Source: Macrostomum hystrix
Lineage: Eukaryota > Animalia > Platyhelminthes
Direction of reading: 5' to 3'
Assembly: GCA_950097015.1 (NCBI GenBank)
Contig: CATNEN010000011.1
Span: forward strand, 3,534,001-3,598,000
DNA length: 64,000 nucleotides
Below the pieces are notes generated by a model, which worked only from the letters and a program-made list of their open reading frames with translations, was not told where the DNA came from and ran no database searches. This document shows, piece by piece, positions 42,201-64,000 of the stretch (positions are counted from its first letter, which is position 1; each line of letters opens with the position of its first letter). The position numbers and the translations under genes were made by a program.

Positions 42201-45200
42201 ATATGTAGAACGATGCAAAAGATTGAAATTGCACAATCTTTACATTACAAGCTGCGCCCATTCATCTTAGTAAAATTATATAAGTTTCGAGCGAACTCAC
42301 TTTCCACCAGACGAAGACGCTGCGCCCGCTTCTGCCACTACAGAGTTCGGGCTGCTAGGATCAAGGTCGGGCATGGCGTTTCTTCGAGACGGCATGTAGC
42401 CGCCTGAGGTACCGCCGGCGTTGCCACCGCTGCCACCGCCCGTGCCGCCACTTCTGTCACAGGATCGCTCGGATTTGTTTCGCTTCATAGTTGGAATGCG
42501 GCCGAATTTGCTGTCAATTGGAGTTTTTGTTGGGCTTAGTGAGGACTCTACGAATCTTTTTAATAAGTTGAAGCAAAAAGTTGTGAATAATGCATATTTT
42601 CTTGAACGCAGGTGTTAAATAAGGTCTTTTAAAGCAATTTTTAATCAAGTTGTACCAAAGCCAGTTCCATATCATTTCTTTTATTAAAATAAGATATTGA
42701 GACATTTCTAACTATGTTTAGATCTACAGCTCGGAAAAATTATTCCAATAAACTTTATCTAGCTATTAGAATAAAAATTAATCCGGATATTGTGAAATTT
42801 AGTGAAATTTTAGACAGCAAACAATAGTGCGGCTAAGATCTTGTTTTACAGGAAAGTAGAAAGCTGAACTGACAAATCAAGTTTCAAAATTTGAAAGCAC
42901 TAAATAAATGTGACCAATAGAGTCAGTACCATTTCCGCCATTCATTTCTAGTACTCGTACTTGTCAGTCCGTTGACCCATTAGTTTTTTAATGATGGTGC
43001 AATAACACAATAAAAAACCATTTGTGATGATTTTTAGCTATTTATTTCCCGTGACAGGATAAAATTTTCCCGTGAAAAAGATAACGCTAAGTTCTCTGGT
43101 TAGAGCACTATCAAAATTAGGGCAACGTTTGCAGTGCTCTAATTGAGCTACCTTCGCCAGGCGTGACCCGGACTGGCTTGTTCGCTACTAGCCAGGTGTG
43201 GAAATGGAGGTCTGAAAGATTCGATTATTGGTAGAAGTGCTTTTAAACACACAAAACTAATTGTCTCACAAGAGGCAACTGGCACACTCTACTGCTGTCT
43301 CTAACTGCTGCAAAACAATCCCATTAAAATAGGCATTGTACGGCTTCAAAATAATTTCTTAGAATTCAAAGCTAAATTCGTGAGTAGAAGCTTTAAGCAT
43401 TGTGGTTGCAAACGATTAATGAATTAGTGTCGGTCGAAAGCTGTAGAGTTTTTCATACATTAGTAAAATTTTTGTCAAAATGATTTCATAAATATATATT
43501 TATTTTATCTAGGCTCTTTTTAAACAAGCTCGTAATTTTGTAAAATTCAAGCGAACCAAAAAGTTTAATCAGTCCAGTAAAATGACATGCTCACCCAAAA
43601 AAGATTACGAGCAAAGTAAAAGAAGATTACAGTCTAAGCATTAAGCAAGTAAAAAATAGTTCCAGCTGCCATACCTAAATGATTCACGGTCTAAGCTGAA
43701 GTTAAGAAAACCCAGTAAAGATGCCAACAAACAAAGAACATGTAAAACTGGAAGATAAAATGCAAAAATAAATATAGAAAGCTTCGAAGCGAACAAAAAT
43801 GGAAAGGAAAATACATGACGCAATGCAAGTATTAAAATGGGTGGACCAGAAAGCTCTCTGAGCGGATTTGACGCACGTGTACACGATGCCCAGTTACTGA
43901 TACCTCATTGTTGGACATACCGTCTAAAGCTTGAAGTGCTCTCTTGATAGAAGCTTGCTCAATTGTGCAGATCATTTTTAATGATGCCAAGGAAGATGTT
44001 GGCGAGCGGGAGAATGGAGTGGTTGCGTGAATTCACTTTGTCTTTAAAATGTACAGTAAATATAAAAACATGTACATGAAGACTTTTACGGTTGTAATTC
44101 GGTGCATGCTAATAATAAGATATGTTTTGCATTAGAGAAATGCGACTCTTAAAACTCGATGAAGATTCCTTCTTAGTGATGAATATATCATAAATAAACA
44201 GCTATAAATAAAACAACAACTTAATAGGCAGATAGTTGGAAATTAAAACGAAGGTTGTACACGTAAGCTGGCGACAGTAAAGACTATAGGTCTATAACTC
44301 ATACTTTCGCTACGAAACTAAAATTATTATATTCACTACTACAAGTAGCATTAAATTAGGCATTAGAAAATGAAATCATCGCTTACGTGCTGGGTGATCT
44401 CATTGGTCGCATGTGCGGCTTCCAGGTGGCCACCGAGGTGCTCGATGGGTCGGCGGCGTAGCAGCGCCACAGCGATTGAATCAACGTCGCGGCCGGCACG
44501 CGCCGCCTGATGAGGTGTTTCTGACGCTGATGCTGCTGAACTTTTAGGGCGAAACCAGAGCCGAGAATGCCCTGAAATTATATTGAACATTGAAACAGAG
44601 TCACATCAGATAATCAGAAAATACCAGCTATAAGTGCTTCTAGTCTAGAAGAAAATTAGATAAATGCATGCACTAAAATACTGGTGCACAACAACCAAAA
44701 ATGCTAGCGAATAGAGGCTATAAAATAAATGATAACTGACACTGAGTGTCGTGAGGGAGTTACATGAAACTGAACTCATATATTTGACAATAGAAGGACC
44801 ATTTTAAATATACATGGGAGATATTTTAAATAACCTCATCATCTTAATTTTTTCTATGTCGGACTACTTTTAAAGCTAGTTCATCGTAATGGACGGAACA
44901 TTTTAACTCATAAGGTGGACTTTCACGAAAAATCGGTTTATTCGGCTTTGGAACTATCGCAAAGTAGGCAGTGGGTATTGGAAAACCCCTGAGCTATTTT
45001 TAAGGGGTAATTAGTGTGGTCCTTTTACTGTTAACCGTTTATAATCTCTCCCATGTCTAATCTTTCCTGTGTGGAATCTCTCCCGTATCTAATCTGTCCC
45101 GTGTCTAATATCTCCCGTGTCTAATATCTCCCGTGTCTAACATCTCCCGTGTCTAATATCTCCCGTGTCTAATATGTCCCGTGTCTAATCTCTCCCGTGT

Positions 45201-48200
45201 CTAATATCTCCCGTGTCTAATATGTACCGTGTCTAATCTCTCCCGTGTCGAATCTCTCCCGTGTCTAATCTCTCCCGTGTCGAATTTCTCCCGTGTCGAA
45301 TCTCTCCCGTGTCGAATCTCTCCCGTGAAGAATCTCTCCCGTGTAGAATCTCTCCCGTGTAGAATCTCTCCCGTGTAGAATCTCTCCCGTGTCGAATCTC
45401 TCCCGTGAAGAATCTCTCCCGTGAAGAATCTCTCCCGTGTAGAATCTCTCCCGTGTCGAATCTCTCCCGTGAAGAATCTCTCCCGTGTCTAATATGTCCC
45501 GTGTCTAATCTCTCCCGTGTCGAATCTCTCCCGTGAAGAATCTCTCCCGTGTAGAATCTCTCCCGTGTAGAATCTCTCCCGTGTAGAATCTCTCCCGTGT
45601 AGAATCTCTCCCGTGAAGAATCTCTCCCGTGTAGAATCTCTCCCGTGTAGAATCTCTCCCGTGTAGAATCTCTCCCGTGTAGAATCTCTCCCGTGTAGAA
45701 TCTCTCCCGTGTAGAATCTCTCCCGTGTAGAATCTCTCCCGTGAAGAATCTCTCCCGTGTAGAATCTCTCCCGTGTCGAATCTCTCCCGTGAAGAATCTC
45801 TCCCGTGTAGAATCTCTCCCGTGTAGAATCTCTCCCGTGTAGAATCTCTCCCGTGTCGAATCTCTCCCGTGAAGAATCTCTCCCGTGTCTAATCTCTCCC
45901 GTGTCGAATTTCTCCCGTGTAGAATCTCTCCCGTGTAGAATCTCTCCCGTGTAGAATCTCTCCCGTGTCTGCTAAGAAAATCCAAATTTATCAGTGCTGA
46001 TAAAAAAGGAGAAATTGAAGAACGCAAAGACAACAAGCTGGTGAGCAGACTAGTGACAGCGGTACTGAGTAGGCAGGCTGCGATCCATAGCATGAGCTGC
46101 TTACAGCAGGCAGGGCAAAGAACGATATGCCGGCAATGGAACAGAAAGAGGCAACAATTTTTCCGCTCCAAGTTTTCGGGGTCACGTCGCCATAGCCCAC
46201 TGTACACAGGGTGATCTGCAAACGGGGGTGTTTTTTTAGTTTTTTTTGTTTTTTTTCGGCTCTCATTGCAACCTAAATTGCGGGATTTCAGTTTGTCAAT
46301 AGAAGCCCTGTGTTTATCAATTTAACATAAAATCTTCATAAAAAACGACACCCTTGGTTGGCAGAACTGACACCCTGTGCTGGCACAGTTGGGCTATGGC
46401 TGTTAGTAAAGTTCAGCACTTTCTTATGAAAACTTGCGCTTAGCGATCCGTAATTATTGTACTTTTACGACTGTACAGTAAGTTATCACAGTAAGGGGCA
46501 TAAGCGTCAAACATAAAGAATAATCAATTTAGAAAAAAATTGTCAGAAAGACTAGACAGAGTATGGCAGGGTATTTGATTAAACTCCCTCTCAATTGTCG
46601 AACAGTTCCTTTTTTCGCTCCCCAAAGACCCACTTCCTTTCCAACTCACTCCGTTCTCAACTCACCCATTCTTCAACTCACTCCGTTCTCAACTCATTCC
46701 ATTCTTAACTCACTGCCTTCGAAACTTACTCCATTCTCAACTCACTCCATTCTCAACTCACTCCCTTGACAACTCACTCCGTTCTCAACTCACTCCGTTC
46801 TCAACTCACTCCATTCTCAACTCACTCCATTCTCTACTCACTCCCTTGACAACTCACTCCATTCTCAACTCACTCCATTCTCAACTCACTCCATTCTCTA
46901 CTCACTCCCTTGACAACTCACTCCATTCTCAACTCACTCCGTTCTCAACTCACTCCATTCTCAACTCACTCCATTCTTCAACTCACTCCGTTCTCAACTC
47001 ATTCCATTCTCAACTCACTCCATTCTCAACTGACTCCATTCTCAACTCACTCCATTCTCAACTCACTCCCTTGACAACTCACTCCATTCTCAACTCACTC
47101 CGTTCTCAACTCAATCCATTCTCAACTCACTCCCTTGACAACTCACTCCATTCTCAACTCACTCCGTTCTCAACTCAATCCATTCTCAACTCACTCCTAT
47201 TACCATTTCAAGTCATTATTTTTTCGAGTCATTCAATTTACATTAGAAGCTATTGTAAAGATGCGCCATTAGGTATTACCACTTTAGTTTTTCTATTCTA
47301 GGTCACACAAAAGTTTCGTAGAATTTAAAAGGAAGCAGGTAAAAAAACAAAAGCCTATATTAATTAGTTTCTTTTATTTATAGCATCTACTACGAGAGTA
47401 CAAAGGCAAGGATTGATAGCATAGCAACATTCAGCTCACATACTATAAGTGCAAGCTATGAGGATAAGTACGCATTGTTTAAAGTGCATTTCTACACGAA
47501 ATTTTGTTATTCTCTAGTCAAAACTTTCCTGTTAAACTCGAGACGACAGTTAAGAAACAAAGTTTCAGAAGTATTCGTAGGAACCGGTTCTCGTTTAATA
47601 TTTCCGCAAACTAATTTTTTCCAGTTAGTTTACCGTGAAACTTTGTCTCTAAAAACTGTCAAATGAGACCTCCTGGCTTCGTCCTGAGACAACTCACCGG
47701 CGGCAAGGCATAGAAGCTAATAATAGTGAGACAAGCGGCTGAGCAAGCCAGTTTGCCAAGGTAGGAAATTGGTACGGTCTGGCCATAGCCCACTGTACAC
47801 AGGGTGGTCTGCCAACACGGATGGTGTCACGTTAGCCAAATTTTTTACAAAATATTTCTCTACGAATGATCCATTTGCAACAGACTACTTACGGTAGTGG
47901 CATGAACATGTAAGTAATAAAATAATTCGATTTAAAATGCGATTTGCGTGACTGGTAATTGATGCCGCTTTCTATAGCATGTTAATTGACTTGCACTTTT
48001 AATAATTTATTACCCTACCTTGAACAGCAAGAATCAAAAGTTAAATTCAATGCCAGTCACGATCCTAGCTGCCTCAATTATTGATGTTAACCTTTTGTAT
48101 CTAGCCGTAGATTGAGCCAGTGTTGAAAGTTTCTGAGAGCACTGAGCCAAGTGTGCAGCAGAAAGTACAGCCGCATCTATTGCATGGTGAATCGGAAGGC

Positions 48201-51200
48201 TGCTTACAACTGTTCAGTCCATGGACTGTGGGCACGCGAAACCCACCTTCAATCACCCCAGCTGGTACCCATTTAACAGCTGGGTGAACTGAAGCAATGC
48301 AGAGTAAAGTGTCTTGCTAAAGTACACTAATTGTTACATTGGAGTCGGGAATCGAACCCCCGACCTTTTAGGTCGTGAGTCTGAAGCTCTAACCACTTGG
48401 CTTGGCTCTAAGCCCATATAACCCTTAGCAAAAACGCATTTACATCAGGAAACGGGCTTGTTATTCAATTAGTTTTACTTTGTAAAACCATTTTTAATTA
48501 GTTACTAATGTGCTCCGACTGAAAAGTAGAAACAGACGCTTGACAGGATTTTTACGCAATTTGTATCGACATGTCCATCAACCGACTGTCATTGTCGTCA
48601 GACATTGTTACGAATACGAGTATTATGCGAATAAATCAAGTTTAAATTATTTATTATAATATTCTATTATTATTTTCAATTTCAATTCTGCTCAATATAA
48701 AAAATAGTACTCACCACACCCCACCAGAGAGCATCCGCATAGTTACTAATCTGAGTGTCCTGCTCGTCCTTCTCGATCAGGTACATGACGAATGAGCTGA
48801 ATATCAGGCCGAGAAATCCGATGTACACTGTGGTAAATAGCTCCTGAGGATTTCGAGGAAATATAAAAATCTGCGTATCTAATTTTACTTTTTTCCTACT
48901 TTTCAGTGTGGAGCATAGATTCCCATGGTTGATATTGATTACATTTAGTCATATCAGTTTATGTCATAAGCGACAGATGGCTTCGTTGAAAAATGGTTCA
49001 AGCCTCGATCTAAAAAGCATTCATTGACTAAAATAACAACTCATGTGCTCATCTGTCTAAAGTTTTAAGCTTTCTATCTCAAACCTTCTCTCTGCAGATC
49101 ACTTTCAACTTTTCATGCTTCGAAGGCTCTTGAGCATGGGGGTGCTCGGGTGAGATCTCTCGGCGTTTCTAGTCGACTGGATTGACCAGTGGCTGATTTC
49201 AGCCATTTTCGTTCGATTGCTTGACTCTATATTCTAGAGTATTAAGTTGACACCAAACAAACCTCGAATTTTTTTCTAAAAAAGCCTAGTTTTAGGTGAC
49301 ATATTACGTTATTGAAAGCAAATCAACTGAAGTCGGTGAGCAAAAGTGCATACTACCGACCTGTCTGTGCGCCCACACAACAGACGCCAGAAGCTTCCAG
49401 CTGCCGCCCCGCCGGTCCATGCGAATCATGCGCAGGATCTGGAAGAAGCGAAGGCCGCGTAGCGCCGAAGCTGCAAACACCTGCCGGTCACTGCCCAGGG
49501 CCAGCACAATCACCGAGGCTGTGATTACGATCAGGTCTGGAAGGAGTGTCAGACAGGCATGGAGGATTAGAAACAATTAATTCTCGATTAACGCAGCTTG
49601 CTTATATTCAAAGGCCTCCTAAAGTCCCTCTGCTCCGATAAGTTTCTAAGAAGCGACTTTTTGGATCGATAAAAATAAATTATTTTAATTTTAATTTTAA
49701 TTGCCAGAAGGCCGTACACACTGACGCATCATTCGTTGACATTACGGTCAACCCTGTAGCCATAATAATAATAATAATTGCAGGAGGACTGCGGACAATG
49801 ACACATCGTTTGGTGACACTAGACCCGACGCCAGCGAGGAGACAATTCTGCCCATTTCGCTGACTCCTGAGCACACACGCACACAGATACTGTACGCAGG
49901 CACTAGCTCACACAGGTGTACATCTGCCCTGAATTTCTCATCGTCAGGCAGCGTACACTTCACACTGCATTGGAGGCGTAAATTGCACCCCAAATAAACG
50001 TGAACTCGCCGCTGAATCTAGCTCAGGGACATTGGTGCGGGAGGCAAACGCGTTAGCCACTCTGCCACCGACCACCTGAAGGCTTTAAACCGCCGTGTCG
50101 CTTCTCAGCGTCAGCCACCACCGTTTTAGTACTAAATGAACTTTGGTACAGCTTTTTATCTAGACGCCATTTTGTCAATTCGAACTTTTGAGAAAATTTC
50201 CTTTCCAAGAATGTGCGGAGTGCAGATGTGCTGTCGGTATGGTCTCAGCTGGAAGCCGAAAATTGGTTTTCCCGATTCAATGGCTTGATAAAAGAATCCT
50301 AAAAGTGGGAAAAATGAAAAATGATTACAGCCAGTCATTGACAAATGAAGACACTAGGGCAAGCTTCTCAAATCCCATGAAGAATTTTCCTTTACCCCTT
50401 ACCCAACTTTTTTCCCTACTCAGTCCCAAAAATGTATTATTTCTTATTTTATTTCGAAGCTGCCAAATAGGGAGGCAACATGCAGCACAGGCCACAGGCT
50501 GTGATAAGCTACACCCACCACTGACGCGAGAACGACTGGACAAGCGAGAACACTGTAATCTGACACCCATCAAGATAGAGAAAGAGAGAGAGGGAGACAG
50601 TGAAAGTTCCGACACCTCCTATATCCCCATCGCGCCCCCTAAGGCTCTCCTTCCCCCTCTCATCATCTCGCTGCCTTTCGTTCGGAGCCACGCAGGGGAT
50701 CTGGGTGGGAGTTGGTCGGGGCAGAACATCTTCAAACATCTCTGCATGGGCACTTGGCCTGTGCGAGAGGGGGCACTTCGGGGTTGACAGGTCCTGCAGC
50801 AGGGAGAGACGATAGCGATGCAGGGGATGGGAGGCTGGTTTCTGTGGGATGCAGCTGGCTAGCTCTCTGGGGACGGTTTGGTCTGGAGGTCTTCTTTGCG
50901 GCCTCATCTTTGAGGCCTCATTGCTCAGACTCACAAGCGGAGGACGGCTGGGCGGGACAGACACCAAGCAGTCTGTTGCTAAGGGTTGGTGGAAGCCTTT
51001 GCGACATCTGATGAGAAAATTTGCTGCCTTTTTGTGTGGGATTCTTCTGCTAGCCCTCTGTTCTTTTAGTTTTTCTTCTATGCTTTTTTCAGTGAGGCAC
51101 CTCATTTGGTTTGACACTGGCATTCTTTATAGACCACACCCGATAGCGCCTGAAATATCACCAATGTGTTGACCGAGGGGTTTTTCGCAGTCAAAAGCGT

Positions 51201-60479: not shown

Positions 60480-62555
60480 GTCTACCTCTCACCATTCTAC
60501 TGTCACTAACCTGTCAACCTCTCACCATTCTACTGTCACTAACCTGTCTACCTCTCACCATTCTACTGTCACTAACCTGTCTACCTCTCACCATTCTACT
60601 GTCACTAACCTGTCTACTTCTCATCATTCTACTGTCTCTGATCTGTCTACCTCTCACCATTCTACTGTCTCTGATCCGTCTACCTCTCACCATTCTACTG
60701 TCACTAACCTGTCTACCTCTCACCATTCTACTGTCACTAACCTGTCTACCTCTCACCATTCTACTGTCACTAACCTGTCTACCTCTCACCATTCTACTGT
60801 CACTAACCTGTCTACTTCTCATCATTCTACTGTCTCTGATCTGTCTACCTCTCACCATTCTACTGTCTCTGATCCGTCTACCTCTCACCATTCTACTGTC
60901 ACTAACCTTTCTACCTCTCACCATTCTACTGTCACTAACCTGTCTACCTCTAACCATTTCACTATCTCTGATCTGTCTACCTCTCACCATTCTACTGTCA
61001 CTAACCTTTCTACCTCTCACCATTCTACTGTCACTAACCTGTCTACCTCTAACCATTTCACTATCTCTGATCTGTCTACCTCTCACCATTCTACTGTCAC
61101 TAACCTGTCTACCTCTCACCATTCTACTGTCACTAACCTGTCTACCTCTCACCATTCTACTGTCACTAACCTGTCTACCTCTCACCATTCTACTGTCACT
61201 AACCTGTCTACTTCTCATCATTCTACTGTCTCTGATCTGTCTACCTCTCACCATTCTACTGTCTCTGATCCGTCTACCTCTCACCATTCTACTGTCACTA
61301 ACCTGTCTACCTCTCACCATTCTACTGTCACTAACCTGTCTACCTCTCACCATTCTACTGTCACTAACCTGTCTACCTCTCACCATTCTACTGTCACTAA
61401 CCTGTCTACTTCTCATCATTCTACTGTCTCTGATCTGTCTACCTCTCACCATTCTACTGTCTCTGATCCGTCTACCTCTCACCATTCTACTGTCACTAAC
61501 CTTTCTACCTCTCACCATTCTACTGTCACTAACCTGTCTACCTCTAACCATTTCACTATCTCTGATCTGTCTACCTCTCACCATTCTACTGTCACTAACC
61601 TGTCTACCTCTCACCATTCTACTGTCACTAACCTGTCTACCTCTCACCATTCTACTGTCACTAACCTGTCTACCTCTCACCATTCTACTGTCACTAACCT
61701 GTCTACTTCTCATCATTCTAGTGTCTCTGATCTGTCTACCTCTCACCATTCTACTGTCTCTGATCCGTCTACCTCTCACCATTCTACTGTCACTAACCTG
61801 TCTACCTCTCACCATTCTACTGTCACTAACCTGTCTACCTCTCACCATTCTACTGTCACTAACCTGTCTACCTCTCACCATTCTACTGTCACTAACCTGT
61901 CTACTTCTCATCATTCTACTGTCTCTGATCTGTCTACCTCTCACCATTCTACTGTCTCTGATCCGTCTACCTCTCACCATTCTACTGTCACTAACCTTTC
62001 TACCTCTCACCATTCTACTGTCACTAACCTGTCTACCTCTAACCATTTCACTATCTCTGATCTGTCTACCTCTCACCATTCTACTGTCACTAACCTGTCT
62101 ACCTCTCACCATTCTACTGTCACTAACCTGTCTACCTCTCACCATTCCACTATCTCTGATCTGTCTACCTGTCACCATTCTACTGTCTCTGACCTGTCTA
62201 CCTCTCACCATTCCATTATCTGTGATATTTCTACCTCTCACCCTTCTACTGTCACTAACCTTTCTACTTCTCATCATTCTACTGTCTCTGATCTGTCTAC
62301 CTCTCACCATTCTACTGTCTCTGACCTGTCTACCTCTCACCATTCTACTGTCTCTGACCTGTCTGCCTGTCACCATTCTACTGTCTCTGACCTGTCTACC
62401 TCTCACCATTCTACTGTCTCTGATCTGTCTACCTCTCACCATTCTACTGTCTCTGACCTGTCTACCTCTCACCATTCTACTGTCTCTGATCTGTCTACCA
62501 CTCATCCTTTCTACTGTCACTAACCTGTCTACCTCTCACCATTCTACTGTCTCTA
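60480..62555. repeat. 33-bp minisatellite with 198- and 495-bp higher-order structure
   Basis: Unit AACCTGTCTACCTCTCACCATTCTACTGTCACT; the diagnostic variant CTTCTCATCA recurs at 198-bp (61211/61409) and 495-bp (61211/61706) spacing. Confidence 0.97.
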
Positions 62556-63009
62556 ACCAGTCTGAAGCTATTTCGGAATCTTCTAAATCAGTTGCACAAC
62601 ACAATTGCTTCTCGCTATGTCAAGTCAAGTCGGTTCTAGTTTTCTCGCAGATGAAATCGAGTAAGCACGCACCTGTCAACGGTCAAGGGCGGGTCTTCCT
62701 TTACCAGGTCCTGCGCGTAAACACAAGACAGAGACAAACAAGTGACTCTTGTTTTGAGGAAAAAAAATTTTAGTAAAATGCGCGCACTTGTTAAAGCAAA
62801 AGATTTCGGAAGTTTGGCGGGCTGAAAAAGATTTTAATCTTCTAGCAATGTCGAAAGGATTAGGCAAAATTTACAAATCAAATTGTAGCATTTCTTTAAA
62901 AATACTGTCTTTGTGTCTGACCGATAGATGGGGACAATTTACAACAGGACGACTAAAACATACAGGCAATGGCAGGTAAAAGATGTCCGAAAATATGAAA
63001 ATAAAAAAC

Positions 63010-63925
63010 ACATCAGAGACAGACACATCAGAGACAGACACATCAGAGACAGACACATCAGAGACAGACACATCAGAGACAGACACATCAAAGAGACAGA
63101 CACATCAAAGAGACAGACACATCAGACAGAGACACATCAGAGACAGAGACACATCAGAGACAGACACATCAAAGAGACAGAGACACATCAGAGACAGACA
63201 CATCAGAGACAGACACATCAGAGACAGACACATCAGAGACAGGCACATCAGAGACAGACACATCAGAGACAGACACATCAAAGAGACAGAGACACATTAG
63301 AGACAGACACATCAAAGAGACAGACACATCAGAGACAGACACATCAGAGACAGACACATCAAAGAGACAGACACATCAGAGACAGACACATCAGAGACAG
63401 ACACATCAGAGACAGACACATCAGAGACAGACACATCAAAGAGACAGACACATCAGAGACAGACACATCAGAGACAGACACATCAAAGAGACAGAGACAC
63501 ATCAGAGACAGACACATCAAAGAGACAGAGACACATCAGAGACAGACACATCAGAGACAGACACATCAGAGACAGACACATCAGAGACAGACACATCAAA
63601 GAGACAGACACATCAGAGACAGACACATCAGAGACAGACACATCAAAGAGACAGACACATCAGAGACAGACACATCAGAGACAGACACATCAGAGACAGA
63701 CACATCAGAGACAGACACATCAAAGAGACAGACACATCAGAGACAGACACATCAGAGACAGACACATCAGAGACAGACACATCAGAGACAGACACATCAG
63801 AGACAGACACATCAGAGACAGACACATCAGAGACAGACACATCAGAGACAGACACATCAGAGACAGACACATCAGAGACAGACACATCAGAGACAGACAC
63901 ATCAGAGACAGACACACCAGAGACA
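63010..63925. repeat. 15-bp minisatellite (CATCAGAGACAGACA)n with 17-bp variants
   Basis: About 60 tandem units. Confidence 0.97.
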
Positions 63926-64000
63926 TCTGAAATATAGAGGCACTTAAATTGCATCCCAGGTCTAGCATGTGTCCGCAGACATTGCTTTGCAGTCTCTGAT

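Follow-up and report, generated by a model that had tools for sequence, protein, structure and literature searches.

An intronic element complementary to the starts of both tandem pore exons in a KCNQ-type gene of Macrostomum hystrix

When a gene carries two homologous exons in tandem, what could cause a transcript to include one and leave out the other? The question is raised by a potassium-channel gene of the KCNQ (Kv7) type that lies on the minus strand of a 64,000-nt stretch of Macrostomum hystrix DNA (contig CATNEN010000011.1, positions 3,534,001 to 3,598,000; hereafter the window, in whose coordinates positions are given). The stop-free frames of this gene encode the N-terminus, S1, S2, S3-S4, S5, two pore/S6 exons, an exon with the motif GILGSGF and a long C-terminal exon (Table 1). 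The two pore/S6 exons, B and A, are tandem, homologous and equal in length (111 nt); they share one reading phase and carry TLCTVGYG...ALP in register. An AG precedes both, and the donors are GTGAGT after exon B and GTAAGC after exon A. The earlier note on this DNA had identified both exons but needed correction at their starts, which lie at 46215 for A (acceptor AG 46216-46217) and at 47808 for B (acceptor AG 47809-47810). Exon A is 75-84% identical to the same exon in other animals. The pyrimidine tracts at both acceptors are poor compared with those of other species, and regulated exons commonly have poor pyrimidine tracts. Because both exon lengths are multiples of three, nonsense-mediated decay (NMD) cannot enforce exclusive use of A or B, and a structure would therefore be needed.

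Table 1. Features of the KCNQ-type gene and of the intronic element, in window coordinates.
Feature	Position	Strand	Basis or remark
S3-S4 exon	49360..49537	-	spliced RNA contigs
Constitutive S5 and pore-helix exon, upstream	48715..48842	-	spliced contigs, runs X2 and X4
Pore/S6 exon B, 111 nt, ends SFYALPP	47698..47808	-	open frame, AG acceptor, GTGAGT donor
Selector B: exon B start (27 nt) with its acceptor region	47782..47830	-	duplex -69.2 kcal/mol
Possible weak extension of the inverted copy	46401..46462	-	includes GAAAACTTG, matching exon A +37..+45
Intronic element ('docker')	46341..46400	-	gapped inverted copy; duplex energies; z 7-8 against shuffles
Selector A: exon A start (27 nt) with its acceptor AG, a weak pyrimidine tract and the candidate branch-site motif CTAAA; wholly paired with the element in the predicted hairpin	46189..46239	-	
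Pore/S6 exon A, 111 nt, ends SFFALPA, canonical	46105..46215	-	translation and RNA contigs
Next exon, predicted	44386..44571	-	stop-free frame and KCNQ motif

In the pre-mRNA the S5 exon is followed by exon B, an intron of ~1.3 kb with a 16-nt minisatellite, the intronic element, a spacer of ~105-125 nt and exon A. Two distinct 16-nt minisatellite arrays, at 45200-45970 and 46600-47200, flank exon A and the element; a scan of 45900-48100, which covers part of the first array, reported no inverted repeat between them. A stable hairpin (-39.2 kcal/mol, z -3.8) is predicted in the intron at 47530-47670 on the minus strand, ~40-160 nt 3' of the exon B donor. Elsewhere in the window, the minus-strand stop-free frames at 60517-62535 (RDSRMVRGRQV...) and 62900-64000 (DVSVS/LMCLS...) consist of tandem repeats; they are satellite arrays with strong GC skew and not genes. 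A phmmer search with the 474-aa last exon against 1.8 billion representatives gave no match, and no homologue of exon B was found among short ORF products.

The candidate for such a structure is the 60-nt element between the two exons. The earlier note had described its plus strand as a gapped copy of the exon text, and alignment bears this out: read on the plus strand, 46341-46400 gives a gapped alignment with the sense sequence at the start of each exon. The element RNA is thus complementary to the acceptor region and initial 27 nt of either exon. With exon A the plus-strand text has in common the blocks AAAAAA, ACACCC, GCAGA, CACCCTGTG, ACAG and TGGGCTATGGC; with exon B it shares GACAC and GTTGGCAG, the latter spanning the acceptor AG, in addition to the same exonic blocks as with exon A. 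It differs from the exon B text by ~1 substitution and ~7 small indels, the extra bases in the exonic blocks lying on the element side. The sequence GGGCTATGGC has three occurrences in the 64 kb, one each in A, B and the element, where 0.04 would be expected by chance, and the 25-mer CACCCTGTGTACAGTGGGCTATGGC is present only in exons A and B. Membership of the element in a repeat family of the window was ruled out, and no decayed second copy of it was found upstream of exon B.

The strength of this complementarity was examined with RNAduplex, using 1000 dinucleotide shuffles of the element as the null. The energies were -63.3 kcal/mol for element:A and -69.2 kcal/mol for element:B, compared with -27.8 ± 4.4 and -32.7 ± 4.3 kcal/mol for the respective shuffles, of which none (0/1000) reached the observed energy. 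Folding against shuffled controls, one of the checks that the earlier note had set out, thus finds the duplexes with both exons far stronger than any of 1000 shuffles. A pairing-aware local alignment against the 4 kb flank gave z = 7.0 for A and 8.0 for B, exceeding every shuffle, and the element was the top match for both exons in that flank. Three helices, of 10, 5 and 10 bp, take up all 25 exonic nucleotides (25/25) and are interrupted on the element side by bulges of 1 nt and 4 nt; the predicted pairing runs on through the acceptor AG into the upstream tract (46216-46236 for A, 47809-47845 for B). The distances given previously also hold, with a loop of ~105-125 nt to exon A and the element ~1.4 kb downstream of the exon B acceptor. 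A continuation of the inverted copy past +27 was considered as well; its similarity is suggestive and not significant alone (p ~0.06 for A, 0.1 for B). The sequence feature is real and highly non-random, and it is probably under RNA-level constraint. That it serves as a functional RNA structure, of whatever type, we regard as likely.

Folding of longer segments indicates which partner the element would take. The 251-nt local fold is the element:A hairpin, with -78.5 kcal/mol and z -5.7. When the whole 1771-nt region is folded, beginning upstream of B and ending with A, the minimum free energy (MFE) is -450.6 kcal/mol with the element paired with A. An MFE fold also lengthens the element:A hairpin into 46401-46462. 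Blocking the exon A site in the fold makes the element pair with exon B, and blocking the element itself costs 41 kcal/mol of ensemble energy. In a nascent RNA ending just 3' of the element, the MFE structure pairs 46341-46400 with 47782-47845 over 48 bp. By stage of transcription, the predicted dominant partner is thus B first and A later, and the models suggest that exon B has a kinetic head start and exon A a thermodynamic edge. In both predicted structures the pyrimidine tract, AG and exon start all lie inside the duplex; the A duplex also takes in the candidate branch-site motif CTAAA. Sequence and folding therefore agree with the proposal that one element serves either acceptor: the same 60 nt pairs with the acceptor and filter codons of A or of B, but not with both at the same time.

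We propose that two RNA structures may compete in the KCNQ pre-mRNA, with the element as their only docker. It would form a bulged duplex of ~45-50 bp with either exon, taking in the first 27 nt, the acceptor AG and the weak pyrimidine tract before it; the acceptor inside the duplex would be hidden from the splicing machinery and the remaining exon would be spliced in. Transcription reaches exon B first, the element next and exon A last, so the element could first clamp B. A clamp on B would yield the exon A isoform, the one seen in RNA, whereas the thermodynamically favoured short-range element:A hairpin would favour exon B instead. The equilibrium model favours this hairpin, that is, it hides the exon that is actually used, and it is on kinetic grounds that we infer clamping of B first. 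Likewise, we infer that the structure may form in vivo, that it may occlude a splice site and that exon B may be used at all.

This logic has a direct precedent. In human ATE1, one inter-exon element is contested by two similar regions, each of which overlaps the 3' splice site of its exon, 7a or 7b (PMC7797038). The choice there was shown experimentally to be made by hindrance of one 3' splice site, through R1-R3 versus R3-R4 pairings (Kalinina et al., NAR 2021, PMC7797038), and masking the middle element leads to double inclusion (PMC7797038). Single-element occlusion, the mechanism that the earlier note had put forward, is not new, having already been demonstrated experimentally for ATE1 (PMC7797038). 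Like ATE1, the KCNQ locus has tandem homologous exons, similar sites overlapping the acceptors and a single complement between the exons. Unlike ATE1, its pairing enters 27 nt of coding sequence, comprising selectivity-filter codons, and the predicted duplex far exceeds that of ATE1 in length and strength; a second long-range module was not found in KCNQ; and the gene and the animal differ, with the KCNQ case known from sequence and folding. Our preferred but tentative reading, a real possibility that falls somewhat short of probable, is a switch of the ATE1 type, in which competing structures decide between exons A and B by occluding the 3' splice site of one of them. If correct, the KCNQ switch would join this already known class.

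Comparison of the two exons with each other provides a second line of evidence. Across the shared block, A and B show no differences (0/25), including at 8 synonymous sites, whereas 56% of the other 84 nt differ; over 81 of these 84 positions, the differences number 14/27, 13/27 and 18/27 at the first, second and third codon positions. The same block was compared among 65 distinct orthologous exons, all encoding TLCTVGYG. Among ortholog pairs at least 10% diverged elsewhere in the exon, 0/1981 had an identical 25-nt block, and the mean was 4-7 block differences; coding constraint alone is therefore insufficient to account for the A/B island. The island, the paired region and the well-kept part of the inverted copy all coincide. 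Since no similarity is detectable between the introns flanking A and those flanking B, the duplication is old. Judging from its sequence, exon B would be a coding exon currently or until recently, as a long-dead exon is unlikely to keep 111 nt, its frame, AG/GTGAGT and the register.

These observations bear on the possibility that the element is a relic without function, left when a short inverted copy of part of the exon start landed in the intron, with the A/B island kept by short-tract gene conversion together with coding constraint. The text of the element does look like an inverted copy, maybe one extending weakly past +27, and the genome abounds in repeats and minisatellites adjoining exons; exon B, moreover, is unseen in RNA in two assemblies. 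Gene conversion could maintain the identity of the A/B island, but it requires flanking homology, which is now lost. An old relic should have decayed as the A/B introns did, in which no similarity is left. For a young one, ~7 indels with ~1 substitution would be unexpected, although a complex template-switch event perhaps made small insertions at its birth. Neutral decay usually yields the opposite ratio of substitutions to indels. The observed ratio fits a helix preserved with bulges, unlike neutral decay, and the exact match between the well-kept part of the copy and the A/B island also speaks against a relic. We consider a relic somewhat unlikely.

Expression of the two exons was examined by aligning RNA runs of unspecified tissue to 47215-49650 in the form of assembled contigs, from which rare variants are lost. 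In runs X2 and X4, both from the same organism, a contig joins 49537-49360 to 48842-48715 and continues with 'AT' plus 25 letters fitting 47806-47782. Exon A starts with 'AT' and exon B with 'AC', and the fit ends exactly at the point where A and B diverge; the X2 and X4 mRNAs therefore use exon A. Joins from S5 to A are the only exon content of this kind seen in contigs of the two runs. The body of exon B had zero coverage in these two assemblies, in which the neighbouring exons had a depth of 15-19 and rare forms are dropped. The intron piece 47451-47660 was covered at depth 4.4 in run X2; it is the sole intron piece assembled in that run, and the 47530-47670 hairpin sits inside it. For the related organisms B and C, RNA coverage on 47215-49650 was limited to a repeat. 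A short interspersed repeat at 48190-48370, which occurs in the two related organisms as well, reaches word depths in the thousands among the RNA-run contigs of the source organism, and many contigs continue into unrelated sequence.

The same contigs bear on RNA editing. An ADAR editing-site complementary sequence would form a duplex that recruits ADAR to the I/T codon, the ACA Thr or the TAT Tyr of A and/or B, and the earlier note had raised A-to-I recoding of T or Y in TVGYG. As in an ADAR-type substrate, the predicted duplex is imperfect, extends over at least ~20 bp and contains exonic adenosines, with all 25 exonic nucleotides paired. It thereby resembles the GluA2 R/G duplex and the Kv1.1 I/V hairpin (RF00485), in which a channel exon likewise forms an imperfect duplex with a complementary sequence. 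The GluA2 R/G editing site adjoins flip/flop and lies in an exon-intron duplex. Planarian flatworms possess an ADAR2 that edits mRNA (PMC8797187). The prediction of editing was not borne out at the majority level: the X2 and X4 contigs equal the genome across 'AT' and the 25 nt of exon A, with no A-to-G in the block, as read from majority contigs that cannot show minor editing. Exon A also gives a match to Rfam RF00485 K_chan_RES at 46092-46200 on the minus strand, at 36.7 bits against a gathering threshold of 51, and a similar weak match was found on the homologous exon of a KCNQ locus from another animal (L041). We rejected K_chan_RES identity, as the match is below threshold with many broken or non-canonical pairs and most likely reflects pore/S6 coding homology. 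The KCNQ duplex is thus unlike known editing duplexes in showing no consensus-level editing and in having an Rfam match that is sub-threshold and not structural. Furthermore, recoding T or Y in TVGYG would harm selectivity, and editing does not require a duplex that spans the acceptor. A role in editing appears very unlikely.

To place the element in a wider context, 89 comparison KCNQ loci of other animals were assembled, 9 of them contigs obtained through an ORF search with exon A and 80 through a metagenome scan. Their exon identity to exon A is at most 84%, no close relative having been found in the protein and contig collections, and none of the 89 has a second pore exon at E <= 1e-3. No complement as strong as the element was found in these 89 loci, the best reaching z = 4.7. 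The second-best complement to the exon start among the other loci (z 4.7) lies ~1300-1360 nt upstream of the pore exon of locus L042.

A distant clade with a single pore exon, comprising 11 loci with 10 distinct sequences, has a conserved intron element of ~55 nt, whose distance downstream from the exon ranges between 50 nt and 4.7 kb. These loci (L041, L051, L054/L058, L061, L065, L068, L077, L082, L088 and L089) are metagenome-derived animal contigs; in L089, for example, the exon is at 1528-1638 and the element at 1704-1780. The core of the clade element is TCGTGACCAGTGCAAGGGCGTG. An independent RNAalifold run places this element in a helix with the pore-exon acceptor and the opening ~35 nt of that exon. 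By a separate count the helix has 31 pairs and is 96.5% paired, compared with 26-58% when the partner is slid, and two pairs show compensatory changes. When the clade elements were permuted among species, the observed value was reached in 17/2000 trials. Support for the clade helix is moderate, as most changes are wobble-compatible. The clade element has no match to an Rfam family.

These results indicate that a helix over the KCNQ pore-exon start can exist without exon duplication or exon choice. The order in the clade, exon and then element, is the order of exon B and the element in the window, and the single-exon clade is a possible ancestral, unduplicated state. Homology of the window element to the clade element is not demonstrable, both being constrained by pairing to homologous exons. 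The clade helix also lends weight to a hairpin that serves one exon only, either as a local stem tuning the inclusion or skipping of exon A or as a long-range clamp permanently silencing a harmful pseudo-exon B, with no regulated A/B choice in either case. The local element:A hairpin is the MFE structure and exon A is the only one of the two seen in RNA, as would be expected of such an arrangement. It leaves the A/B identity at synonymous sites unexplained, however, along with the intact splice sites and frame of exon B, which a single mutation would silence. We regard it as quite unlikely.

The competing-structure reading also invites comparison with docking systems in insects. Like Dscam1 exon 6, 14-3-3zeta, Mhc and srp, the KCNQ locus has one docker with mutually exclusive complements, which may decide the tandem exon that is used. 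In the insect docking/selector systems, an exon is activated by the pairing that selects it, and the sites are confined to introns, outside the cluster or beside each exon; the predicted KCNQ pairing, in contrast, would repress, covering the acceptor and the exon. In the literature searched, we found no paper joining docking-site/selector splicing with Platyhelminthes. Duplication of one arm of a stem-loop has been proposed to create competing structures (Ivanov & Pervouchine 2018, PMC6071210), and as in that model, two copies of one arm, here the exon starts, face a single other arm. The KCNQ docker lies between the copies, unlike that of the model (PMC6071210), which is outside the cluster. 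In its fullest form, the proposal would be that exon duplication in this lineage turned an acceptor/filter-codon helix like that of some single-exon invertebrates into a bistable occlusion switch between a canonical GYGD and a non-canonical GYGQ/PPG pore, with the pairing forcing the 25-nt filter identity. We consider this complete scenario unlikely.

Should the structure prove not to be real, the locus would serve as a caution that a highly significant inverted repeat beside duplicated exons is insufficient without RNA evidence. If the switch exists, ATE1-type splice-site occlusion would extend to an invertebrate ion channel, and the locus would offer a tractable case of exon duplication generating mutually exclusive splicing, as well as a natural worked example of its origin from a duplicated stem arm. 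RNA structure would then constrain synonymous sites within the most conserved codons of a potassium channel, and the gene might encode a channel isoform whose filter, GYGQ, is unusual.
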